Sequence record: MZ443780.1 | Length of the DNA stretch: 64,000 nucleotides | Direction: 5' to 3' (one strand) | In this document: positions 8,424 to 35,114 of the stretch, one piece after another | How the letters are laid out: each line of letters starts with the position of its first letter | How positions within the stretch are numbered: the stretch's first letter is position 1 | Program-made: the position numbers and the translations under genes | Notes under the pieces: generated by a model | What the model saw: only the letters and a program-made list of their open reading frames with translations | Database searches by the model: none | What the model was told of the DNA's origin: nothing

Positions 8424-8920
8424 TGGAAACAAATTCAGTGGGCGCAAGCCCTAATAACGAAAGGCATCGCATCTTCTACAAGCAGCCGAAACGAGTACCT
8501 CCCTTCGATACAGCTTTCGTCCGTTCATCTAATCGTGAAGGTCTGAAAGTTCTCCTATCGGCTGCTCCTGAACATTGTCAGATTATTTTGTTTACGGACG
8601 GTCCCGGCGCTGCTTACGCCATGAAACGCCTCTTTAAGCGCAACTTCAAACTTTGTTCACAAGCGTTACAACTTGACCTAAGGACTCTCACGTTCACGGG
8701 TCAGGTCGTTTTTCAGTTCGTTCGTGGTGGTGCAATGCTCGACCCACTTGCTCGCTACTTCTGTGCTGGTGACAGTTACCTGCATGAGCTTGCGCAGACA
8801 AACAAGGGCATCGAGTTCGAAACAGACACGATTGATATGTTCTGTTGCGGTATCGGGTTTCATCGTGCGTTACGTGAGCGTGGTCGAGGCCGTTCTCTCG
8901 TATTCGCGGAGGAACAATGA
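8423..8920 (+). CDS. hypothetical protein
   Basis: 165-aa ORF coupled to neighbours. Confidence 0.6.
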   Translation: METNSVGASPNNERHRIFYKQPKRVPPFDTAFVRSSNREGLKVLLSAAPEHCQIILFTDGPGAAYAMKRLFKRNFKLCSQALQLDLRTLTFTGQVVFQFVRGGAMLDPLARYFCAGDSYLHELAQTNKGIEFETDTIDMFCCGIGFHRALRERGRGRSLVFAEEQ

Positions 8921-9945
8921 GTAGATCGTTTGCCAGTATCGGAAAGAACTCCGCGCCTGGTTCTTTGCCAAAGATGAAGATCAAGTACGGCAAGAAGCCG
9001 ATGCTTCACGTTGTTGATGCGTCGAACTGGATGTGCCGTGCTTACTTCGCTACGCAGAAAAATCCCACGTATGCGAAAGACGGTACGCCTACTTACGGCC
9101 TTCGTCAATTCATGTACATGGTCAAAGACTTGATCGACATTGCTGCTAAGGACCCGAACGGTGCGTATCTCGCTTTCTGCTTTGACCCAAGCTCAAGCGA
9201 TACGTGGCGTTATCGAGCAATACAGCAATGGGCTGCTGAACACAAGAAGAAATACATTCGTCAGGTGTTCAAGAAGTCTAGCGACTACAAAGGCAACCGC
9301 GACCGTACTCAGACCGTAGAGCTTGGCCCGCAGATGACACTCGCCCGAGAGATTCTGCAAATGGCGGGTTACTATGTCGGCATTAAAAAGCCGTATGAGT
9401 GCGATGACCTTGTGGGTACGTTGAGCGACCGCTTCAAGCACGACTACCTGATCAAGCTGTATTCGCGTGACAAAGACTACGTGCAACTTGTTGACCACAA
9501 GAACGTTGAGCTTATCATGCAAGCGCAGTCGAATGCTGCTGAACGCCGATTCGATTACAAAACAGCAAAAGGTTTCTTCGGTGTTCCTGCCGACCGAGTT
9601 ATCGACATGCTTGCTCTTTGTGGTGACGGCGTGGATAACGTGCCTGGCATTCCGGGACTTGGTGAGAAGACCTCGATTGAGCTTATCAATAAGTGGGGTG
9701 GGGCGATTGGTATTCGTGACGCTCTGCTGAAAGGCAAACTCAAGTCGAACGCTGGCTGGGCTAAAGCACTCATGATGCAAGTACCAGCTATGGATATTGA
9801 ATTGCAAATGGAGCTTGTAACTATCGACCGCAACGTACCGTCGTTACCTCGTAACATCGAAGCGTTTGCACCGCGCAGACCAGACATAAAAGCGCTGAAA
9901 GCTGTTAAGAAGCGCCTGGCTCTGCCTCAACTATTACACGTCTAG
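8917..9945 (+). CDS. 5'-3' exonuclease / flap endonuclease (PolI N-terminal, T5 D15/T4 RNase H-like)
   Basis: VVDASN, ECDDLVGT, SRDKDYVQL, LCGDGVDNVPGIPGLGEKT helix-3-turn-helix motifs. Confidence 0.92.
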   Translation: MSRSFASIGKNSAPGSLPKMKIKYGKKPMLHVVDASNWMCRAYFATQKNPTYAKDGTPTYGLRQFMYMVKDLIDIAAKDPNGAYLAFCFDPSSSDTWRYRAIQQWAAEHKKKYIRQVFKKSSDYKGNRDRTQTVELGPQMTLAREILQMAGYYVGIKKPYECDDLVGTLSDRFKHDYLIKLYSRDKDYVQLVDHKNVELIMQAQSNAAERRFDYKTAKGFFGVPADRVIDMLALCGDGVDNVPGIPGLGEKTSIELINKWGGAIGIRDALLKGKLKSNAGWAKALMMQVPAMDIELQMELVTIDRNVPSLPRNIEAFAPRRPDIKALKAVKKRLALPQLLHV

Positions 9946-12251: not shown

Positions 12252-13022
12252 ATGAGCAACATTGATAATACAATGCCTGAGGGCAAGTGGGAGTTCAACG
12301 AGCCTGTTGCTGCTGTGTTTGATAACATGCTGCAAAACTCAATCCCGTCGTATGGCCGTATGCGCGACTTGACCTATCGTCTGGGTCGTCAGTTCGTCAC
12401 GCCCGGTACTGCTATCGTTGACCTCGGAGCTTCTCTGGGTCGTGCTATTGAGCCGTTCTGCAAAGAGTTCGGCGAGTACATCTACGTTCACGCTGCTGAC
12501 CGTCCTGAGCCAGATCGTGAAATCGGTAACATGTACTGCTGCTACGAAGTCGCTCCTGCGATGCTTGAACGCCTGCGTGAAAACGAAGTGCTGAAAGCGG
12601 CCAAAGCGAAAATCAGTAGCGAATCGCTGGTGGACGTTGACACGTTCCGCTTCGACGAACAGGTTGAGTGCTCGCTCATTCTGTCTGTACTCACTCTCCA
12701 GTTCACGCCGATTGAACATCGTCAACACGTCCTTGAGAAAGTCTATGACTCTCTTGCAAAAGGCGGTGCGTTCATTCTCGTTGAGAAGGTTCTCGGTGAC
12801 GACAACTTCCTCGACCGTCTGCTGGTGGACACGTACTATCACATGAAAGGCGACAACGGCTACACGCAAGAATCTATTGCTTGTAAGCGTAAGTCACTCG
12901 AAGGTGTTCTGGTACCTGTCAAAGCTGCATGGAACGAAGAACTGCTGCGCAAAGCGGGTTTCAACCGTGTAGAATGTTTCTACCGCGATCTCAACTTCGC
13001 CGGATGGATCGCAATTAAGTAA
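12252..13022 (+). CDS. cmoA: carboxy-S-adenosyl-L-methionine synthase (CmoA family)
   Basis: Full-length similarity to E. coli CmoA as recalled: W.F.E.VA.VF..M...S.P.Y, VDLGASLG, TLQF, GGAFIL.EK, K..NGY....I..KR..LE.V (Arg corresponding to the Cx-SAM-binding Arg retained), L.KAGF....F...NF. Confidence 0.88.
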   Translation: MSNIDNTMPEGKWEFNEPVAAVFDNMLQNSIPSYGRMRDLTYRLGRQFVTPGTAIVDLGASLGRAIEPFCKEFGEYIYVHAADRPEPDREIGNMYCCYEVAPAMLERLRENEVLKAAKAKISSESLVDVDTFRFDEQVECSLILSVLTLQFTPIEHRQHVLEKVYDSLAKGGAFILVEKVLGDDNFLDRLLVDTYYHMKGDNGYTQESIACKRKSLEGVLVPVKAAWNEELLRKAGFNRVECFYRDLNFAGWIAIK

Positions 13023-13032
13023 GGGAAGTAGC

Positions 13033-14295
13033 ATGAAAGTAAACGGGCGTATCTTAGCAATCGTACCGCACAAGACTCTGGCTGATCGCACGAAGTCTGG
13101 TGTTGGTGCTTACATCGACGGACTCGAAGCGTATGGTTTCTGCGACTTCATCACTGACGGTGAGAACAGTTCCGTAACCAAGAGCTTGTGGTTTAACTAC
13201 GGTGATACCACGCTGAGTGACGGTTATAAAGTGGGGCACATTCAAAGTGAACTGCTTGCTGCTCTTGAGCGTCATCCGTATCGTGCAATCATTTGCAGCA
13301 CATACGAAGCGATTGAGGCTGCTGTCGGTCTGGGCTTGCCAAAGATTATGCCCGTTTACTATCGTTCGCATAACAGCTTCCTGTTGACGCAAGATCTCAA
13401 TGGTCTCGGTGCTGAGAAGATTCACCGTGCTCTACTGCAAGCTGGCGTAACTGGTCTGCGTGTGTTAGCGAACTGTGATTCAACTGCAAACAATCTGGCA
13501 TCACGTTATCCTGTTGCTGCGTCTGTCGCGTACAACTCGTTCAACGTGCCTGACTACAATCCACCAGCAAAGCGCAAGCCGACGCTGTTGATTATCTGTC
13601 GCTACGAAAAGGTTAAGCGCCCTGCGTTTGCTGCTCGTATCGCTGCTGCATCTGGTCTGCCTGTTCGTGTGATGACAGGCAGTGATCGCCAAGTTAAAAG
13701 CTGGCAGAAAGAACTGACCGATGCCGGTGTCAAAGACCATACAGTCGTTAGCGGTATCAGTGGCAAAGAGAAACTTGAGTTCATCGGCGCTTGTACCGTG
13801 GCTCTCTCCTGCGCTGAAATCGAATCGTTCGCTAACGGTGTGCGTGAGTCTGTACCGTACTGCCCAACGTTCATCGTGCAAACATCGAAGTTCGACTGGG
13901 CGAAAGATTACACACGCTTCTGCTCTCTGGACAAACACATCCACGTTCGCACTGTTGACCGTGTGACAGAGCAGGAAGTCACTGAGCTGGGTAATGAGAT
14001 TGCTTACTGGGCTACTACTCGCTACCTGAACAATGCTCAACGTAAAGACTTGATGACCAAGTGGGTTGCTCAAGTCGATAAGGGCTGGGCTGACTTTATG
14101 AAGAATGCCGTTGTTGCTGATGACGGCAAGCCCATGAAAACTGACCTGTCGAAAGAACTCGAACAAAAAGGCGTAGTAGACTGGTCAGAAGTACCTGCGC
14201 TTATGCGTACTGTAAAAGCATTACACAAATGCCATGCTCGTATGGGCCTGACATTCGATGGCACCAAAATCAAAACTAAAGGAAGAAAGAAATGA
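13033..14295 (+). CDS. GT-B (GT4-like) glycosyltransferase
   Basis: ICRYEKVKR (cf. GRL..EKG) and ALSCAEIESFANGVRES (cf. PS..EGFG....EA). Confidence 0.65.
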   Translation: MKVNGRILAIVPHKTLADRTKSGVGAYIDGLEAYGFCDFITDGENSSVTKSLWFNYGDTTLSDGYKVGHIQSELLAALERHPYRAIICSTYEAIEAAVGLGLPKIMPVYYRSHNSFLLTQDLNGLGAEKIHRALLQAGVTGLRVLANCDSTANNLASRYPVAASVAYNSFNVPDYNPPAKRKPTLLIICRYEKVKRPAFAARIAAASGLPVRVMTGSDRQVKSWQKELTDAGVKDHTVVSGISGKEKLEFIGACTVALSCAEIESFANGVRESVPYCPTFIVQTSKFDWAKDYTRFCSLDKHIHVRTVDRVTEQEVTELGNEIAYWATTRYLNNAQRKDLMTKWVAQVDKGWADFMKNAVVADDGKPMKTDLSKELEQKGVVDWSEVPALMRTVKALHKCHARMGLTFDGTKIKTKGRKK

Positions 14296-15326
14296 GCGTG
14301 ATTGGTGATATCTATAACATTCCTCAACCGTATGCGATGTACTGCGGCAATGCCAAAACCAAAGCAATGGCAAAGATTACTGCCGGTATGGTTGAGTGGG
14401 CTCCTGAGAAGGTATGTTGTGTAGTCGAAGACGCTGAACGTTTGTTCGCTGACGTACCGTGTGTTGAAGTGCGCGATCTCGATAAGACCGACGCTGAAAC
14501 TCTGGTTATCGGCTTTGCGCCATTTGGCGGTCAGATTAACGATGACATTGATCGCGTTGTCTGCGAAGCATTAAAGCGCGGTCTGAACGTTGCTGCTGCT
14601 CTGCACGTCAAACTGGCAGACAATCCTAAATACTTCGCGCTCGCTCGTGAGCACGGTGTATCACTGTATGACTTCCGTCATCACCCTGAGCAATATCCTC
14701 TGGGCACTGGTATTCGTCGTGACGGTATTCGCGTTCTGACTGTTGGCACCGACTGCTCCTGCGGTAAGAAATTCACTGCGCTCGCTCTGACCAAGAAGCT
14801 GACCGAGATGAGTCAGAAAGCTGTGTTCTGTGCTACAGGCCAGACAGGCTTCTTGATTAGCGGGCGTGGCATCAACAACGACACTGTGGTTGCTGACTTC
14901 CTTGCTGGTGCTGCTGAGTGGCTTTCACCTGATGACAAAGACGCAATCTATTTGATTGAAGGTCAAGGCGCTATTCGTCACCCTGCGTATACTGGTGGCA
15001 GCATGAGTCTGATTGCTGGCTCGCAACCTGATGCGCTCGTTATGTGTCACACTGTTGGCCGTAACGTCATGATGGGCACTGAGCGCGAGATCAGTATCAC
15101 GGACGAAATCTCTGCTAACCTTGCAGCGGCTGCGATGCACGACTGGTACCCTCGCGTTGTTGGTATCAGTATCAACTTCTGCGAGTCTGGTATGGACAAA
15201 GAACAGCGCAAGAAATATCTGGCGACTATTGAGCGTAACATCGGTTATGTAGCGTTTGATCCGCAAGAAGGCGGCGAAGCGTTTGACCGTGTTGCTACTA
15301 CCATCGCGTTGCTGTCGCGCCCATGA
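14292..15326 (+). CDS. DUF1611-family P-loop protein (DgcN-like)
   Basis: LVIGFAPFGG, G.NVAAALH, VLTVGTDCSCGKKFT, ATGQTG, DTVVADFLAGAAE, IEGQGAIRHPAY, GSQPDALVMCH. Confidence 0.88.
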   Translation: MSVIGDIYNIPQPYAMYCGNAKTKAMAKITAGMVEWAPEKVCCVVEDAERLFADVPCVEVRDLDKTDAETLVIGFAPFGGQINDDIDRVVCEALKRGLNVAAALHVKLADNPKYFALAREHGVSLYDFRHHPEQYPLGTGIRRDGIRVLTVGTDCSCGKKFTALALTKKLTEMSQKAVFCATGQTGFLISGRGINNDTVVADFLAGAAEWLSPDDKDAIYLIEGQGAIRHPAYTGGSMSLIAGSQPDALVMCHTVGRNVMMGTEREISITDEISANLAAAAMHDWYPRVVGISINFCESGMDKEQRKKYLATIERNIGYVAFDPQEGGEAFDRVATTIALLSRP

Positions 15327-16258
15327 TAGTCCTAATAGACAACGCTGCGTTAGCGAGTAATGCAGCGTATTTAAAATCACTCGCACCGACCATGATTCCA
15401 GTTGTGAAAGGTAATTTCTATGGGCATGGTTTAGATTGCGTGACAGCGTTCGCGTCTGACTTTGACGTGCTTGCAGTGCATAACGTCCGAGAGGCATTGA
15501 CGCTGCGTGAGCTTGGGCTTGACCACACGCTGCTGATTCTCGGTGGTACTGACGCGCGTATGTGGAATATAGTTCCGGTATTGAATGCAGCGCAAGCCTC
15601 AACGTATGAAGGCCAGTATGCTGTGTTTGCTGATTGGGGCTGTCGTCGTATCAATGTCAGCCCTGGCCAACTTACCAGTCGCCCAGCTCTCGTTCTCATT
15701 CACTCTGAGGACTACCGTCAGCCTGTGTCTGCGCACACTGCTAACGAGATTGCTGTGCGTTACAACATGCCGCGCTCTCGATTGTCTGTAGGCTCAAGCA
15801 TGAATGCGCTTACACCAGACGCGCCGAAGTTGATGCCGCGTGTTGGTATGGCACTTACCGGTTATAGCAGTGATGAAACTGTTAACGGTAATTTGATCGT
15901 AGCGAAGACAGTGCTTGCTCGCATCTGCGATAAGCTGGATGCTGGTCGAGTATTTGGTTACGGTGCATTAGTGCCTAACAGCGCACACATGTTCCTGTAT
16001 TCGATTGATGTGGGTTATTACGATAACTTATATCAGTCAGAGAACAACACGCCTGTGCATTGCCCTAATGTGCCACACGCTAAGGTCACGTTGCTTACTG
16101 GCGTTGCGCGATCAATCAGCATGAACCATGCCTTCGTATTGTCAGATACTGAGCTACCGTTCGACTCTGAAATTGAATTGCTCGGACCGAACGTTCGCGC
16201 AGATTATCTGGCCAAACTTCACGGAACAACAACTGCGAATATTTTAAGGCTGGGTTAA
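15323..16258 (+). CDS. alr: PLP-dependent alanine-racemase-like enzyme
   Basis: PLP lysine motif VVKGNFYGHG, EALTLRELG, PRVGMALTG, catalytic Tyr in FGYG, VGYYD, SISMN; shortened barrel. Confidence 0.75.
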   Translation: MIVLIDNAALASNAAYLKSLAPTMIPVVKGNFYGHGLDCVTAFASDFDVLAVHNVREALTLRELGLDHTLLILGGTDARMWNIVPVLNAAQASTYEGQYAVFADWGCRRINVSPGQLTSRPALVLIHSEDYRQPVSAHTANEIAVRYNMPRSRLSVGSSMNALTPDAPKLMPRVGMALTGYSSDETVNGNLIVAKTVLARICDKLDAGRVFGYGALVPNSAHMFLYSIDVGYYDNLYQSENNTPVHCPNVPHAKVTLLTGVARSISMNHAFVLSDTELPFDSEIELLGPNVRADYLAKLHGTTTANILRLG

Positions 16259-16260
16259 TC

Positions 16261-17130
16261 ATGGCTAAACACGTTTTGCGTAAGCTGTTTGAACAGCACG
16301 TTAAGCAAGAGGTTAAAGCGGACAAAGTTGCAGTGCTGCTGTCCAGCGGCCTTGACGGACTTGTCAGTGCTCTTGCTGCCCACGACTTAGGAAAGAAGGT
16401 ACATGCCTTTACTTTCCAGATGGGTGACAACGAAAGTTTTGACAGCAAACACGCACGTAAAGTAGCAGAGAAGATGGGCTGGGAGTTCACGCTTGTGAAA
16501 GTTCCTACGTCCGACACTGCTATCGCTCAGGGCTGGCGCACACTTCACGCCAAGTATCGCTGTATCAAAAAGCGTGACTACGAGTGTGCTTACCCTATGG
16601 TGTATTGCTACAAGGCAATCAAAGAAGCAGGTTACAAGTACGTTCTCAGCGGCCTTGTTGCTGACGCTTACTTCTGCTTTGCGCGTAATACCCACATCGC
16701 AAAAATCAGCGGCCCGCATAGCGTACTCGAAAAGTTCGACGAGTATCGCAAAGAGTATTGGGCGCCGTGGTTCAAGAACGGTAAGAAGTCTCTCGGCGTT
16801 GACGGCTATAATCCAAGTGGTATGCTGCAACACGAAATGCTGTGCGACACTTTCGGCCTGACTCACGTTAACCCGTGGCTGTTGAAAAAAGTCCATGACT
16901 ACTTCATCGGTCGTTCGTGGCAAGAACTAAATCAACCCAAGCAGAAAATGCCAATAACAGAAGCCTGGGCTGATCACATCGCTGTGGTAGGGCATCGTCC
17001 TCACCGTGGCTATCAAACAGAAGCTGGAGTACCTGCGTACTTCGAACGCTTACTGGATAATCCTGAGATCAACTTCAACGGTCGCAAGCGTGTTATGGAC
17101 CTTGCGCGTGATTGGTCAACGAGGACTTAA
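16261..17130 (+). CDS. asparagine-synthetase-like ATP-dependent amide ligase lacking glutaminase domain (CmoY-like)
   Basis: PP-loop VAVLLSSGLDG, HAFTF, VLSGLVADAYF (cf. SGEGADELF), NPWL..., K..ITEAW; only 289 aa. Confidence 0.75.
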   Translation: MAKHVLRKLFEQHVKQEVKADKVAVLLSSGLDGLVSALAAHDLGKKVHAFTFQMGDNESFDSKHARKVAEKMGWEFTLVKVPTSDTAIAQGWRTLHAKYRCIKKRDYECAYPMVYCYKAIKEAGYKYVLSGLVADAYFCFARNTHIAKISGPHSVLEKFDEYRKEYWAPWFKNGKKSLGVDGYNPSGMLQHEMLCDTFGLTHVNPWLLKKVHDYFIGRSWQELNQPKQKMPITEAWADHIAVVGHRPHRGYQTEAGVPAYFERLLDNPEINFNGRKRVMDLARDWSTRT

Positions 17131-20352: not shown

Positions 20353-20754
20353 ATGAGACCCGAGACCATCGCACGAACGTATAGAGTCCCAAGCCAGACT
20401 TTGGAGACAGTTCACAATATCTGCGAACGCCAAGGCGTAAGATTATCTGACATTGTTCGACGCTATGCCCAATTCGTCGTGCGTACTCGCGGTGAGTTTC
20501 TGCGTTCGGCTCCTCGGCCAGAATCGTCCCAGCTCAACGTGCGTATGCCTTTTGATTTAGCACATTCGTTTAGTCTTGTGTGCAAACAATCTGGCTCTGG
20601 TACCAACACAACTGTGACCAGTTTCCTGAATGAGATCGTTCAACTCAATCGTATTCCTGAGGAACTTCTGCAAGAGTCGGCAGAAGATGTGCGTGAGTAT
20701 ATCCGCAAAGAACGTGCTCGCCTCGATACACTGGAGGCCCAACTCGGAAAATAA
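20353..20754 (+). CDS. tandem ribbon-helix-helix DNA-binding protein
   Basis: Two RHH-like units (TYRVPSQT...CERQGVRLSDIVR; LNVRMPFDL...CKQSG...VTSFL); AAGGA SD favours ATG 20353. Confidence 0.6.
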   Translation: MRPETIARTYRVPSQTLETVHNICERQGVRLSDIVRRYAQFVVRTRGEFLRSAPRPESSQLNVRMPFDLAHSFSLVCKQSGSGTNTTVTSFLNEIVQLNRIPEELLQESAEDVREYIRKERARLDTLEAQLGK

Positions 20755-20755
20755 A

Positions 20756-21598
20756 ATGACAGTAATCAGCCCCATTCGTTATCAGGGCAATAAGCGTAGC
20801 CTTATCCCTCTTATTCTTGAAAACACACCTGATGTGAAAGACTGCCCGCGTATGGTCGATGTGTTTGGCGGTAGTGCCACCGTGTGCGCGAACATGCCTC
20901 AGAAGTTTCGCGTCTACAACGAGCTTAGTCCTCAGGTGTATGAGATCGTTAAGATGCTTGTCGAGCAAGACCCGAAGAAAACATTGGGTCAAGTCAAGCG
21001 TCTGGTAAAGCACTGGTGCCTGACAAACAGCAACGAAGCGAACTATGACGCGTTTCGAACTGTCGTCCAGAAGAAGCGTACTCCCATACTTCACTACGTT
21101 GCGCACAGACACGCACACTCGAACATGCTGCGCTTTAACCAGCAGGGTGTGTACAACGTAGGCTTCGGCGATCGTGGTCTGATTGGAAAGTTCGAGGAGC
21201 TTGAGCATGAGCTTACGACATTCCACCAGCACATGCAGGGTGTTCACCTGACGAACATGAAGTACGGTAAGTTGTTGGGTAGATTAGGCAATCAACTGGA
21301 TTGCAATACGTTCTGCTACTTCGACCCACCGTATCTGGCAAGTGGCGCGATGCAGTACGGCAAGTGGACTGAATCAAACGAACGTAACCTGCTTGCTACG
21401 CTTGAACAACTCAATCGCTTAGGCGTACCGTGGATGTTGAGCAACGTTACAGAGCACAGGCATTTCTCGAACGACCTGTTAAAGCGTTGGCTAAAGAAAC
21501 ACGCGACGACCGTGCTCTACCCGAACAAAAGCTATGCGATGAACAACGGCCAGAGTGGCTCGCATGGTACTGTTGAAATTCTGGCAATGAACTACTGA
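20756..21598 (+). CDS. dam: D12-class N6-adenine DNA methyltransferase (Dam-like)
   Basis: RYQGNKRSL, VDVFGGSATV, YFDPPY, WMLSN motifs. Confidence 0.9.
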   Translation: MTVISPIRYQGNKRSLIPLILENTPDVKDCPRMVDVFGGSATVCANMPQKFRVYNELSPQVYEIVKMLVEQDPKKTLGQVKRLVKHWCLTNSNEANYDAFRTVVQKKRTPILHYVAHRHAHSNMLRFNQQGVYNVGFGDRGLIGKFEELEHELTTFHQHMQGVHLTNMKYGKLLGRLGNQLDCNTFCYFDPPYLASGAMQYGKWTESNERNLLATLEQLNRLGVPWMLSNVTEHRHFSNDLLKRWLKKHATTVLYPNKSYAMNNGQSGSHGTVEILAMNY

Positions 21599-28859: not shown

Positions 28860-29197
28860 CTACACCAGTAATTCGCTTTGACGAACAGACACGTCAACTG
28901 CTGGCAAAGATCTTCGGCATACATAAGCCGTTCTTTGTTGTGCGTCGTGATACGATCATCTCAGGTGGTGACTTGGGCTTTCGTGTGTATCTGTCGAATG
29001 GCACCAACACTGTTACCGTTCCTCGCGTTAAAGGCCTTGACTTGGGCGACAAGCTCTATCTCGGTGATGACGAGGAAGTTTATGAGTGGCATCCTCATAT
29101 AGGCTGCACGTATATGGCCATTGGCGATAATCAGCCAGAAGCACTCGCATTTGGTCTTCATCCAATCGTTTTTCACAAAGACAGTCGGAACTCTTAA
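28856..29197 (+). CDS. hypothetical protein
   Basis: ATGA overlap; 113 aa. Confidence 0.6.
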   Translation: MTTPVIRFDEQTRQLLAKIFGIHKPFFVVRRDTIISGGDLGFRVYLSNGTNTVTVPRVKGLDLGDKLYLGDDEEVYEWHPHIGCTYMAIGDNQPEALAFGLHPIVFHKDSRNS

Positions 29198-30300
29198 TGG
29201 CAAAGCAAACTCTTGATCTACGCGATCCTAATCAGTACGAACTCTATTCCCTGCATTGTGTTGACGAGCAATACATCAATCTGGGCAACGCTATCATCTC
29301 TCAGGGTACTGATGAGTCAGACCCAGGCCGTACAGAAGATACGTGGCGCACCATTATCGGCTGTGGCTTCCAGTTGTCAAACACGCTGATCGCTTTCCCT
29401 GCGTTAGTCAGTGCTCGTAAGAACTGGCTGGCAGCAGTCGATGAGATGTGCTGGATGTCTCGCGGCGAAACGAATATCAGCTCGCTCAATTCCAAAATCT
29501 GGAATGAGTGGGCAGATGAAGACGGCGAGTGCGGCCCTATCTACGGTCTGATGTGGCGCATGTGGCCTGATATCAAAACGTTCCCGACTATTGAGTCGAT
29601 GAAAGAGCGTCAGATCAGCGATGCAGAAATCGAGCGCATCTCGAAAGAGATCAATCGCATGAAAGCTGCCGGGTACACTGAAACGCAAATGGCTGACGGT
29701 CGTGTGTGCTACGAAGGTACAGTTGACCAGTTCGCTGATGCGCTGCGTCAGGTAATGGCCCGCAGTCGTTCTCGTCGTATTCGCGTTCAGGCGTACAACC
29801 CGTCCTATCTGCACATGCAGGGTCTGCCTCCGTGCCACACCGAGTTCGAGTTCAACGTAACCAAGCCGACGCTGTATGAAATCGCTCAGATGGAAGCGCG
29901 TCAAATGGCACCGGCAGAAGATTCGTTGCACATCGTTGTGACCATGAGATCGAACGATGTGCTCTTGGGCAGGCCATTTAACATCATCGGCTACAGCGCC
30001 ATGCACCAGATGATTGCCAAGTGGGCTGGCTTGAACGTCGGCAGCTTTACGCTCAACACTACCAACACGCACCTGTACACGCATCACTTTGAAGCGTTTG
30101 AAAAGCAGCGTGAGCAGTGGGCAGTTCTCGCAGACAACATTAAGCGCACTGGCGAACCTGTTGTCTATCCTATGCTGGAAATCAGCGACGACATTCTCGG
30201 TCTGACGCCGGAAGAGTTGCTGGACAACGCGAACGCAGAGTGGTTCCAGCTTCTCGATTACGCACCATCACCAGCGGTCAAAGGACGTGTGACGAAATGA
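29197..30300 (+). CDS. thyA: thymidylate synthase
   Basis: IWNEWA, GPIYG..WR, SRR, LPPCH, MRSNDV.LG.PFNI, NTHLY. Confidence 0.93.
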   Translation: MAKQTLDLRDPNQYELYSLHCVDEQYINLGNAIISQGTDESDPGRTEDTWRTIIGCGFQLSNTLIAFPALVSARKNWLAAVDEMCWMSRGETNISSLNSKIWNEWADEDGECGPIYGLMWRMWPDIKTFPTIESMKERQISDAEIERISKEINRMKAAGYTETQMADGRVCYEGTVDQFADALRQVMARSRSRRIRVQAYNPSYLHMQGLPPCHTEFEFNVTKPTLYEIAQMEARQMAPAEDSLHIVVTMRSNDVLLGRPFNIIGYSAMHQMIAKWAGLNVGSFTLNTTNTHLYTHHFEAFEKQREQWAVLADNIKRTGEPVVYPMLEISDDILGLTPEELLDNANAEWFQLLDYAPSPAVKGRVTK

Positions 30301-32278: not shown

Positions 32279-32983
32279 ATGGCAAAAACTGCTACCAAAA
32301 CAAAGGACGGAAAAAAGAAAGGCGAGTTGAAGTTTGATCTGAAAAAACTCAATTCAGTCTCTCAGCTCAAGGGCGCAGAGTACAACCCGCGCTTCATTAC
32401 TGACAGTCGCTTGAAAGCTCTCGAAGGTTCTCTCGGGAGTTTCGGTGATCTGTCTGGTATCGTGTTCAACAACAACATCAAGTCTGGTGTGTTGATCTCA
32501 GGCCACCAGCGTCTGAAATCAATCGACGGTTGGAAAACTCGCATCGAGATTCAGCCGACGACTGACAAGCACGGTACTATCGGTCTGGGCTACATTCATG
32601 CAACGCATCCGAAGAAAGCTGATCGTGTTATCAGCATTCCTCTGCGTGTCGTGAACTGGACTGATAAGAAAGCTGAGTACGCAGCGAACATCGCAGCGAA
32701 CGCCCACGGCGGTGAGTTCGATAACAAGAAGCTCGCCAAGCTGGTTGAGAAACTCGATCTGAATACGATCAAGCCTCAGCTGCTGGGTCTCGACCCGCTT
32801 GAGATTCGTGGTCTGCAAGCCAAGATCAAGATTCAGGCGAACGTCGAAGATACGAAACGTGCTGGCAAGACTACTGGCCAGATGAACGGCAGCACCGGTA
32901 AGTTTAATGAGTACAACCCTGATGATGTGGGTGACACTCTGAACTGCACCTGCCCGCGTTGTGGATTTAAGTTCGAGGGATAA
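32279..32983 (+). CDS. ParB-N-terminal (ParB/Srx-like) domain protein with C-terminal Zn ribbon
   Basis: LK.AEYNPR, G....IVFN, LISGHQRL, NIAAN..GGEFD...L..L; CTCPRCG. Confidence 0.8.
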   Translation: MAKTATKTKDGKKKGELKFDLKKLNSVSQLKGAEYNPRFITDSRLKALEGSLGSFGDLSGIVFNNNIKSGVLISGHQRLKSIDGWKTRIEIQPTTDKHGTIGLGYIHATHPKKADRVISIPLRVVNWTDKKAEYAANIAANAHGGEFDNKKLAKLVEKLDLNTIKPQLLGLDPLEIRGLQAKIKIQANVEDTKRAGKTTGQMNGSTGKFNEYNPDDVGDTLNCTCPRCGFKFEG

Positions 32984-32984
32984 T

Positions 32985-35114
32985 ATGATCATCAAGCCGC
33001 CAACCATGAAGGAAATCAACAAGCTGGCTAAACCCTGGCGTGGTATGAGTTTCTTCGCAGGTTGCGGTGGGTCTTCGACCGGTCACAAGATGGCCGGTAT
33101 CGACATTCTGTTGAGCAACGAGTTTATTGACTCTGCGCGTGAGTCGTATGAAGCAAACCACCCGACAACCAAAGTGCTGCCTCATGATATCCGTCGCTTA
33201 GACCCAAGCAAGCTGTTGCGCTACTGCGGTCTTGCTAAGGGTGAGCTGGATTTGCTTGATGGTAGTCCTCCGTGCTTTACCGAAGACACAATCATCCACA
33301 CTGCTGACGGCATGAAGTTCATTTCTGATATGCACGTCAACGATCTGGCAATGACGAGCGTTGGTGAATACTTTCCTGTGTACGACACTATGGTTCGTCC
33401 GTATGTCGGTACGATGCACAAGATTGAAACGATGCTCGGTAGCAACAAAGCAACGCCAGAGCACCCGTTCTTTGTTCGTCGCTCTCAGGCAGACGGTAGC
33501 TACTCTGAGCCGTTCTGGTGTGATGCGAAAGACGTGCAAGAAGGTGACTTGCTCGGTACGCCGCGCACTACCCCTGACATGGGGATTGACGTGTATCAGG
33601 CTCAGATTGATCAGTTGCCTAAGTTAGTAGCGGACTGGGTGACTTACCCTGAGTTCTGGTGGATGATTGGTCACTGGTGTGATCGTGGCACAATCGAAAC
33701 AGTTAACGGTGTTGACGTCATCTGCTTCGAGTCGCACTCAAGCCTTGAGAACGCGATGATCGAGCAGGCGTTTGATGCGCTTAAAATCAGTAGCCTGAAT
33801 CGTATCGACACGACAACGGCGCAGCGCAAAACATTCCGCACTGTTATCGAAGCAGAGCTGGTGCAGTTCCTGCGTCGATTCGTCAGTCAGGAGCAGAACA
33901 AGTTTTCTCGTCGTCTGCCTGCAATCGTGTTCCATTTGTCAAACGAGTTGAAGCAACAATTCATTCTCGGTTGTGCGGGGCATGACTACGTGACTGCTAT
34001 GGGCACAAGCCTTGCTATCACATCTGATAGTCGCCGCTTCCTGATTGAGCTGAACTACCTGTGTGCGTCTGCTTTCAATCGTCCGCTGTTTGACGGTCTT
34101 ATCTGGGCAGACGTTAACTTCGGTAGTGCGTTAACGCCGCGTGAGCGTAACAGTTCACGAGCGCATATCGGCTTCCTGTTCCTGCAGGATGAAGCGCTGT
34201 TCATGCACGAGTTCTCCGATGAAGACCCGCATCTCTGGGTTGAAGTGATTGAGAACCTCGCGTATCAGGCGACCTGTGACGTGTATAACTTCTCTGTGCA
34301 GACAGACGAGACATACGTTGCAAATAGCATGGTCGTTCACAACTGCAAAGGCTTCTCTACTGCTGGTGTGAAAGAAGAAGGCTGGGGCAAAGAAGTTAAA
34401 TACAGCGACAACAAGTATCAGCAGGTTGATGACCTGTTCGATCAGTATTGCCGTATGCTTCAAGGCATGGAGCCAAAAGTGTTCACTGCGGAAAACGTCA
34501 GCGGCTTAATCAAGGGTACCTCTAAAGGGTACTTTGTCGAAATCATGAAGCACTTCGACAGATTAGGTTATTATGTTCGTGCTCCGATGTTGAATGCTTG
34601 CTGGCTGGGTGTACCGCAATCGCGTGAACGTATCATCTTCATGGGTGTGCGTAAAGACGTTGCCCACGCACTCGGATATAAGTCTGCTCAGACCGCTGTG
34701 CCTGATGTTATCCCGTGCGAGACGCAAGCGTTTCTCGGCGATGCGTTGCCGCACATCATGCGATACAAAACAACGCAGCGTGACCTGATCAAATATCTGC
34801 CTGCCGTTAACGGTCCGATGCCTACGATTACTGCTGCTGATGCGATTGCGTATGAGACTGCGCGATTCTCGTCTGCTGGCTTTATCGAAGACAACAAAGG
34901 TCATCGCCGTAAGCTGACCATTGACGAACTCAAAGTTATCTCTGGACTGCCGTCTGACTATAAGCTGATGGGTGAGTTTGAAGAACAATGGGAACGTCTT
35001 GGTCGTATCTGTGTGCCAGCAATGACACACGCTGCATCTAAGGCTTTCATCGAGCACATTCTTCTGCCGTATGCGAAGAAGCGTAAGAAGAAGCCCGGCG
35101 ATATCTTTAAGTAA
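32985..35114 (+). CDS. C5-cytosine DNA transferase (Dcm fold), intein-containing, probable carboxymethyltransferase (CmoX-like)
   Basis: Motif I SFFAGCGG, II NEF, IV GSPP|CKGFS, VI AENVSGL, VIII QSRERIIF, IX RKLTIDELK, X LGRICVP (Arg in place of Asn); GAGG SD before ATG 32985. Confidence 0.85.
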   Translation: MIIKPPTMKEINKLAKPWRGMSFFAGCGGSSTGHKMAGIDILLSNEFIDSARESYEANHPTTKVLPHDIRRLDPSKLLRYCGLAKGELDLLDGSPPCFTEDTIIHTADGMKFISDMHVNDLAMTSVGEYFPVYDTMVRPYVGTMHKIETMLGSNKATPEHPFFVRRSQADGSYSEPFWCDAKDVQEGDLLGTPRTTPDMGIDVYQAQIDQLPKLVADWVTYPEFWWMIGHWCDRGTIETVNGVDVICFESHSSLENAMIEQAFDALKISSLNRIDTTTAQRKTFRTVIEAELVQFLRRFVSQEQNKFSRRLPAIVFHLSNELKQQFILGCAGHDYVTAMGTSLAITSDSRRFLIELNYLCASAFNRPLFDGLIWADVNFGSALTPRERNSSRAHIGFLFLQDEALFMHEFSDEDPHLWVEVIENLAYQATCDVYNFSVQTDETYVANSMVVHNCKGFSTAGVKEEGWGKEVKYSDNKYQQVDDLFDQYCRMLQGMEPKVFTAENVSGLIKGTSKGYFVEIMKHFDRLGYYVRAPMLNACWLGVPQSRERIIFMGVRKDVAHALGYKSAQTAVPDVIPCETQAFLGDALPHIMRYKTTQRDLIKYLPAVNGPMPTITAADAIAYETARFSSAGFIEDNKGHRRKLTIDELKVISGLPSDYKLMGEFEEQWERLGRICVPAMTHAASKAFIEHILLPYAKKRKKKPGDIFK
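33273..34343 (+). mobile_element. intein (357 aa) with degenerate LAGLIDADG-like region in catalytic PC motif
   Basis: Starts CFTEDT; block B ATPEHPF; WMIGHWCDRG and FILGCAGHD remnants; ends VYNFSV...YVANSMVVHN followed by Cys+1. Confidence 0.92.

Follow-up and report, generated by a model that had tools for sequence, protein, structure and literature searches.

Erwinia phage pEa_SNUABM_40 (MZ443780, 267 kb), a jumbo myovirus (genus Alexandravirus) whose host is Erwinia amylovora, encodes a 709-amino acid (aa) protein that is labelled 'hypothetical protein' in the source record. The gene lies within the 64,000 nucleotides (nt) analyzed here (hereafter, the window), which were identical in sequence to bases 1-64000 of the record. 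It raises the question of what a C5-cytosine methyltransferase homologue would transfer to DNA when an intein splits its catalytic motif and an Arg stands in place of the motif-X Asn of ordinary C5-methyltransferases. A preliminary description of the window, made from its letters, had named the protein the likely writer of 5-carboxymethylcytosine (5cxmC) and had argued that automated annotation would miss the connection, which fits the label in the source record; the orthologue in Dickeya phage AD1 is labelled 'putative DNA-cytosine methyltransferase'. The spliced protein is probably a CmoX-family DNA cytosine C5-carboxymethyltransferase, a member of an enzyme class that is already described, having been published in December 2025 (Yang et al., Nat Commun 2025, PMC12783734).

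Motifs, fold and phylogeny of the extein

The open reading frame begins with an ATG at 32985, located 5 nt after a Shine-Dalgarno-like GAGGGA box and 1 nt past the stop of an upstream ParB-like gene, and ends with TAA. A Pfam search of the precursor found DNA_methylase (PF00145; E = 5.8e-38) in two stretches together with Intein_splicing. Joined, the two exteins formed a 352-aa protein in which motif IV was GSPPCKGFS. The corresponding motif was GSPPCKSFS in Pseudomonas jumbo phage PaBG and GSPPCKGFS in a metagenomic relative (P0002), neither of which carries the intein. Six elements (i.e., FxGxGG, E46, D68, SPPC, ENV, and QxRxR) were invariant across 112 aligned relatives, and the C-extein of the window contained ENV and QSRER. 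The Pfam match, the invariant motifs and an AlphaFold2 extein model that drew on 109 homologues (mean predicted local distance difference test (pLDDT) score of 93.9), placed the protein in the C5-cytosine methyltransferase fold with motifs I-X, all of which the preliminary description had said were present.

Motif X was EQWERLGRICVP (QWERLGRICVP), with the CGT codon of Arg674 of the precursor (Arg317 of the extein) at exactly the positions described earlier (Table 1). In sequence alignments R317 fell on R350 of SpCmoX, the CmoX of Synechococcus phage S-B43, and the canonical motif-X Asn of DNMT1 occupied the same column; by alignment, the Asn-to-Arg change thus lies in the motif-X column to which it had been assigned. 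The phmmer alignment of the extein with SpCmoX also placed C97 on C98 and the cofactor-contact residues F24, E46, F47, and D68, conserved in the N-extein, on F25, E47, F48, and D69. In the crystal structure of SpCmoX with carboxy-S-adenosylmethionine (Cx-SAM; 8YF3) R350 contacts the carboxymethyl group of the cofactor; the wild-type enzyme accepts only Cx-SAM, the R350N variant is inactive, and the authors equated this Arg with the engineered N374K change of M.MpeI (PMC12783734). Both precedents given in the preliminary description are therefore correct. By analogy, Arg317 would take the place of the motif-X Asn and bind the carboxylate of Cx-SAM.

The best match of the extein among all PDB sequences was 8YF3 (E = 1e-58), followed by M.HaeIII (9e-19). 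A Foldseek search with the extein model likewise returned 8YF3 first (E = 2.2e-28; template modelling scores 0.74/0.78), with M.HhaI (4e-20) and M.HaeIII behind. Identity to SpCmoX was about 29% over the aligned model, and the closely related protein of cyanophage S-B05, which matched 8YF3 residue for residue in the stretches displayed, was 39% identical to the extein. A survey of the CmoX family collected 5,615 candidates with two filters, SPPC and the Arg (PMC12783734). The window extein had SPPC, after splicing, and an Arg at the position of SpCmoX R350 and HhaI N304. Because every computable feature of CmoX was found in the extein, it would be a new member of this family and not a new enzyme class.

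In the 112 closest relatives without an intein, the motif-X residue was Arg in 107, Asn in four and Met in one, and SPPC was present in all 112. A maximum-likelihood tree placed the window extein in a nine-member, all-Arg clade (support 100/99). The Asn and Met forms made up three small tip clades nested among the Arg forms; Arg is accordingly the ancestral state of this group. On the contig (L012) of one Asn-type relative (P0110), CmoA, ParB and the ligase were absent within 6 kb, as would fit the hypothesis, though this contig is too short to count. The alternative to a carboxymethyltransferase is an ordinary enzyme dependent on S-adenosylmethionine (SAM) that makes 5-methylcytosine, with the Arg as a variant tolerated in one lineage. 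The canonical motifs, intact apart from the motif-X Asn, would suit such an enzyme. However, the Arg was kept in nearly all of these relatives, and SpCmoX with the same Arg takes Cx-SAM and refuses SAM (PMC12783734). This alternative also has to account for the phage CmoA, which is considered with the partner genes below.

An intein at the catalytic cysteine

The intein divides the precursor as DLLDGSPP/CFTEDT…MVVHN/CKGFSTAG (slashes indicate the splice junctions), and codons at the two junctions read PCF at 33270-33278 and HNCK at 34338-34349. The catalytic Cys (codon TGC, 34344-34346) is the first residue of the C-extein and is also the +1 nucleophile of the intein. Because the intein parts Pro96 from this Cys, the precursor lacks a complete motif IV and cannot be catalytically competent; hence, the active enzyme would have to arise by splicing. 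The intein covers aa 97-453 and was confirmed by Pfam, the predicted fold and the conserved splicing residues; the spliced length is 352 aa, as anticipated in the preliminary description. No report of an intein at the catalytic cysteine of a DNA-modification enzyme was found in the literature searched.

On its own the intein scored 37.3 bits against Pfam Intein_splicing (PF14890; cut-off 35.8). Across 22 sequences the class-1 splicing residues C1, T61 and H64 (block B, TPEH), and H356-N357 were invariant, and the +1 Cys was present in at least 90%. Foldseek searches with the AlphaFold2 model of the intein (pLDDT 86.7) returned TliVMA, PhoVMA, PI-SceI, and PI-PfuI at the top (1e-15 to 1e-12), while the middle part matched the LAGLIDADG enzymes I-SceI and I-DmoI at about 1e-5. 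The middle domain had no Pfam family match, and its nature is known from the predicted fold only. The window intein resembled PI-SceI, TliVMA/PhoVMA, and PI-PfuI in having a HINT domain with a LAGLIDADG-fold insert, Cys1, TxxH, His-Asn, a +1 Cys, and an insertion point within a conserved catalytic motif. It differed from them in sequence (only 10-16% identity), and its candidate catalytic acids were not conserved across genera.

The same insertion site was occupied in five genera: Alexandravirus, Snuvirus, Sasquatchvirus (Y3), Yoloswagvirus, and Rivsvirus. In a large protein database, 20 protein clusters, all of them methyltransferases of about 700 aa, had the intein at this site. Relatives with an empty site included PaBG and a metagenomic protein (P0001; 70% identity) encoded on a syntenic contig (L011). 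Beyond this methyltransferase family, the intein search returned two marginal matches only (E = 9e-5 and 7e-4), so no donor lineage was identified. Two metagenomic CmoX relatives (P0006, 602 aa; P0038, 506 aa) had shorter inteins at the identical SPP/C site, one of them of mini-intein size. The site is therefore either occupied by inteins of different lengths or has held inteins that lost the endonuclease domain.

The middle domain was the fastest-diverging part: in Yoloswag and SNUABM_5 it had 29-30% identity, compared with 75-81% for the extein. At the ends of the two LAGLIDADG-like helices, the expected acidic residues (candidates D137 and D238 of the intein) were not conserved in Y3, Yoloswag, and SNUABM_5, and endonuclease activity is consequently doubtful. 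These two observations, together with a catalytic motif split in two, could be taken as signs of a decaying or non-functional copy, in which splicing by the intein has been lost, leaving an inactive precursor and phage DNA that CmoX does not modify. Such decay is most unlikely given that the 709-aa frame was open in all relatives from the five genera and 20 protein clusters, and that C1, TxxH, and HN were invariant and the +1 Cys nearly so. Ratios of nonsynonymous to synonymous substitution rates (dN/dS) against AD1 were also low throughout (0.08-0.17; extein 0.076, HINT domain 0.11, middle domain 0.165), and all three parts are under purifying selection. Loss of the endonuclease leaves splicing unaffected in inteins.

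Partner genes and the block between cmoA and the ligase gene

A CmoA homologue was present about 20 kb upstream of the CmoX gene, where the preliminary description had placed a phage-encoded CmoA (Table 1). It matched TIGR00740 at 1.1e-41 and aligned over its full length with Escherichia coli CmoA (4GEK) at 1.1e-29, its R213 aligning to residue 213 of the 4GEK chain, which would be R199 of E. coli CmoA if the chain carries a 14-residue tag. Identity was 41% to the PaBG protein labelled 'tRNA (cmo5U34)-methyltransferase' and 31% to the CmoA of cyanophage S-B05. Within the genus Alexandravirus, CmoA proteins of AD1 and pEa_SNUABM_35 were 91-92% identical to that of the window.

Table 1. Positions of the CmoX gene, its parts and the associated genes in the window.
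Feature	Position (nt)	Strand	Basis
CmoX precursor gene; 709 aa, 80.2 kDa; intein-interrupted extein of the C5-cytosine methyltransferase family	32985-35114	+	Open reading frame, Pfam
N-extein (residues 1-96); motifs I to III, first half of motif IV (…DLLDGSPP)	32985-33272	+	Aligns to 8YF3 residues 22-97
Class-1 intein, 357 aa, 40.8 kDa, precursor aa 97-453 (CFTEDT…VVHN); HINT splicing domain with inserted LAGLIDADG-fold domain	33273-34343	+	Pfam, fold, conservation
LAGLIDADG-fold middle domain, intein aa roughly 100-300	~33570-34172	+	Predicted fold
C-extein, aa 454-709; second half of motif IV to motif X, with target-recognition region	34344-35111	+	Codons read HNCK; 8YF3 alignment
Arg674 of precursor (extein Arg317), motif-X position; Asn in ordinary C5-methyltransferases	35004-35006	+	Codon CGT
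CmoA homologue, 256 aa; predicted carboxy-SAM synthase	12252-13022	+	TIGR00740, 4GEK alignment
420-aa protein; probably GT-B (GT4-like) glycosyltransferase, weak evidence	13033-14295	+	Glycos_transf_1 matches of relatives
DUF1611/DgcN-like protein, 344 aa	14292-15326	+	Pfam DUF1611 3e-51 and DUF1611_N
Short alanine-racemase-like protein, 311 aa; pyridoxal phosphate (PLP)-lysine motif VVKGNFYGHG retained	15323-16258	+	Pfam Ala_racemase_N 4.3e-14
CmoY-like ATP-dependent amide ligase, 289 aa; asparagine-synthetase ATP-binding domain, no glutaminase domain	16261-17130	+	Pfam Asn_synthase 6.9e-16
ParB-like protein, 234 aa; C-terminal CxxC…CPRC zinc-ribbon-like tail	32279-32983	+	PHROG 620 ParB-like 3.1e-32

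In tblastn searches CmoX was found in the records of 48 Erwinia and 2 Dickeya phages, and the same records also had CmoA. The two also occurred together in PaBG, cyanophages, and TurkishDelight. In the Erwinia and Dickeya phages the position of cmoA was always about 12-13 kb and that of cmoX about 28-34 kb. Gene orders elsewhere were as follows: ParB-CmoX-CmoA-x-ligase in PaBG; ParB-CmoX-x-CmoA-DUF1611-ligase in an unrelated 262-kb metagenomic phage contig (L014); and CmoA-ligase-CmoX in S-B05. A 2018 comparison listed a methyltransferase, an asparagine synthase, a ParB-like 'repressor' and a C5-methyltransferase as common to AD1 and Y3 and absent from the related JA11 (PMC6143709).

A ParB-like gene was directly upstream of CmoX in the window, and the same gene preceded CmoX in PaBG and on three metagenomic contigs (L011, L013, and L014); ParB-domain (ParBc) neighbors have been reported for the CmoX family (PMC12783734). 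The upstream protein in the window was named ParB-like by PHROGs only, with no Pfam match even at E = 0.05. The zinc-ribbon-like tail of this protein (CTCPRCGFKF) was conserved in the homologue on L011, where a ThyA-like gene was also found upstream of ParB-CmoX, beside a deoxycytidine monophosphate deaminase gene.

These distributions bear on the alternative of an ordinary 5-methylcytosine methyltransferase, for which the phage CmoA would instead supply tRNA 5-carboxymethoxyuridine (cmo5U) synthesis or deplete SAM as an anti-defence measure. The 20 kb between the two genes would allow for such separate roles, and the CmoX authors raised the possibility that phage CmoA has SAM depletion as a side role (PMC12783734). 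The strict co-occurrence of CmoA and CmoX across phage records and the contiguity of their genes in PaBG, L014, and cyanophages speak against it; moreover, no CmoB homologue was noticed in the window, though no search aimed at CmoB was made. Taken with the motif-X data, the ordinary methyltransferase is very unlikely.

Several points nevertheless weigh against the assignment of the extein to CmoX. The residues after the motif-X Arg were unusual, being R-I-C-V-P as opposed to the usual R-A/S-V-P-P, with Ile at that position in about five and Cys in three of the 112 relatives; I-C-V was common to the nearest relatives, P0001 and P0002. The target-recognition region (approximately residues 211-271 of the extein) was not alignable with that of SpCmoX, and consequently the GC specificity of SpCmoX is not transferable to the window enzyme. 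The CmoA homologue scored 143 bits, under the TIGR00740 equivalog cut-off of 193, and 109 bits against PRK15451 (cut-off 285). Finally, splicing competence of the intein is deduced from conservation only.

The carboxymethyltransferase assignment receives further context from a putative amide ligase encoded downstream of cmoA. This CmoY-like protein was 34% identical, over nearly its full length (E = 3e-54), to the ligase of the CmoA-CmoY-CmoX cluster in S-B05, and it had no match by sequence to any PDB structure. SpCmoY likewise has no amidase domain. In S-B43, SpCmoY turns 5cxmC into a glycine amide, and virion DNA held the amide only, with 5cxmC undetected (PMC12783734). Because a CmoY-like ligase and accessory genes lie beside cmoA in the window, 5cxmC is probably an intermediate and the final base probably an amide derivative. 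The preliminary description was thus supported in its choice of enzyme, 8YF3 being the top match by both sequence and fold, and overlooked the ligase and accessory genes in presenting 5cxmC as the product.

Three genes separated cmoA from the ligase gene. The 420-aa protein had no family match itself in Pfam, NCBIfam, or PHROGs; Glycos_transf_1 was matched by three of its seven relatives (best 7.8e-6), the best PDB evidence from the family profile was a glucosyltransferase match (E = 0.008), and E264…E272 (an EX7E-like motif) was invariant in the family. The DUF1611 protein matched the DgcN model NF041892 at 9.5e-92, a score under the cut-off of that model, and PDB 7XRJ at 5e-62. Among 50,697 phage records, DUF1611 homologues were found only in 34 Erwinia/Dickeya jumbo phages, always directly after cmoA. 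On L014 a DUF1611 gene (12469-13482) was likewise located between CmoA and the ligase, near CmoX.

Content of this block varied among sister phages: pEa_SNUABM_35 had none of the three genes, AD1 had DUF1611 only, and pEa_SNUABM_7 had the 420-aa protein and DUF1611. Ligase types also varied within the genus, with two non-orthologous types at one locus although the adjacent CmoA proteins were 92% identical. The window, AD1, and SNUABM_7 enzymes were mutually 82-87% identical, whereas the pEa_SNUABM_35 ligase, encoded at the same locus (L007:5422-6285), was 26% identical to the window ligase and 43% identical to that of PaBG. The distribution of DUF1611 and the variation in cassette and ligase argue for DUF1611 as a member of the pathway and for final adducts that vary from one sister phage to another; DUF1611 looks like an unrecognized component of some CmoA/CmoX/CmoY systems.

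Alternatively, 5cxmC could be the final mark in this phage, with the ligase-like gene and the cassette acting on something other than DNA, for instance on a small molecule or in the D-amino-acid metabolism of the cell wall. The ligase gene is 16 kb from CmoX, and DgcN and alanine racemase are normally enzymes of amino-acid metabolism, and both facts speak for this explanation. It is nonetheless unlikely: the S-B43 counterpart of the cyanophage ligase to which the window protein is related converts 5cxmC fully to the glycine amide, the ligase gene and cmoA are in one co-directional block, DUF1611 in phages is confined to the cmoA-ligase block, and on L014 the genes on either side of DUF1611 are those of CmoA and the ligase, with CmoX nearby.

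Proposed pathway, known systems and significance

The preferred pathway, in which CmoX is the writer and 5cxmC an intermediate, would have four steps (i.e., CmoA, splicing, transfer, and ligation), each proposed by homology to the enzymes of PMC12783734. The phage CmoA would make Cx-SAM out of SAM and prephenate. The 80-kDa precursor would splice to a 39.5-kDa CmoX with an SPPC active site, so that one Cys would have two roles, serving first as the +1 splicing nucleophile and afterwards as the nucleophile that attacks C6. Cys97 would then attack C6 of cytosine, and the carboxymethyl group held by Arg317 would move from Cx-SAM to C5. Finally, the CmoY-like ligase would probably adenylate the carboxylate of 5cxmC and couple an amine to it, and the glycosyltransferase-like, DgcN-like, and racemase-like neighbors may supply or further decorate this amine. 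Use of Cx-SAM, formation of 5cxmC and its amidation are in this way predicted for the window proteins.

A more far-reaching proposal is that the block from cmoA to cmoY is a swappable hypermodification cassette. In it, the DgcN/DUF1611-like protein as an acyltransferase, the PLP racemase-like protein, and the glycosyltransferase-like protein would work with the ligase to make an undescribed 5-carboxymethylcytosine amide (e.g., a D-amino-acid adduct, or an N-acylated and/or glycosylated one), and an intein whose splice nucleophile is the catalytic cysteine would gate production of the writer. This proposal is tentative, and on present evidence it is doubtful that all of its parts hold.

The biological role of the modification would likely be to shield phage DNA from host nucleases; the SpCmoX product blocks HhaI (PMC12783734). 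Word statistics over the whole window, against a Markov expectation, gave no clue to the target motif, as depletion was clear for CTAG (0.23) and CCWGG only. CCAGG was observed 12 times vs. 45 expected and CCTGG 25 times vs. 67 expected; GCGC and GGCC were not depleted. The strong under-representation of CCWGG suggests restriction-site avoidance at Dcm/EcoRII-type sites, which C5 modification may not cover.

Almost every gene in the first 47 kb of the window was on the + strand. A DnaB-like helicase was encoded at 31-1458 and a FEN-like 5'-3' exonuclease at 8917-9945, which indicates that the modification genes sit in a replication and nucleotide-metabolism module. A D12-class (Dam-like) N6-adenine DNA methyltransferase at 20630-21598 (Pfam, 6.4e-23) represents a second DNA-modification enzyme carried by the phage. 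A thymidylate-synthase homologue at 29197-30300 scored above the TIGR03284 cut-off and, at 367 aa, was about 100 aa over the usual length.

Besides the known inteins, three known systems were compared with the window. SpCmoX of S-B43 shared with the window enzyme its fold, SPPC, the Arg at R350, the cofactor contacts, CmoA and a CmoY-type ligase in the genome, and ParB-domain neighbors. The window enzyme was unlike SpCmoX in its 357-aa intein at the catalytic Cys and its target-recognition region; its partner genes are 16-20 kb off, whereas those of SpCmoX are adjacent, with extra cassette genes between cmoA and cmoY. The phages differ as well, pEa_SNUABM_40 having a 267-kb genome and an enterobacterial plant pathogen as its host. 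M.MpeI N374K was alike in having a positive residue for the motif-X Asn together with Cx-SAM use (PMC12783734); unlike the window enzyme it is engineered, carries a Lys, is CpG-specific, and is distant in sequence (PDB 4DKJ, E = 2e-6, residues 87-213).

In PaBG, genes PaBG_00176-00180 encode in order a ParB-like protein, the C5-methyltransferase, the 'tRNA (cmo5U34)-methyltransferase', a hypothetical protein, and an asparagine synthase. The PaBG CmoX was 48% identical to the window extein with both the SPPC and GR motifs, and, as in the window, CmoA was encoded and a ParB-like gene was upstream. The PaBG cluster differed in being contiguous, in lacking the intein, and in having another ligase type (25% identical to that of the window). 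The DUF1611, glycosyltransferase-like, and racemase-like genes of the window were absent from it.

Erwinia, Dickeya, and PaBG go unmentioned in the CmoX paper and its supplements (PMC12783734), as do inteins. In the literature searched, the catalytic-Cys intein in five genera, the dispersed loci, and the accessory cassette with swapping of ligase type were not described.

To date, a single cyanophage has provided the demonstration of CmoX chemistry. The full CmoA/CmoX/CmoY system is predicted here in about 50 cultured and sequenced Erwinia and Dickeya jumbo phages of five genera, whose genes now carry the label 'hypothetical protein' or 'tRNA methyltransferase'. As these phages are easy to grow, 5cxmC-derived bases could be sought in them directly by mass spectrometry, and the variation in ligase type and accessory genes offers a natural panel for the attached amines and the roles of the accessory enzymes. 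For phages that are being developed against fire blight, modifications of this kind affect restriction digestion, sequencing, and the evasion of host defences. The main value of the locus is thus a culturable panel of phages for 5cxmC-derived hypermodifications, together with the intein at the catalytic cysteine.

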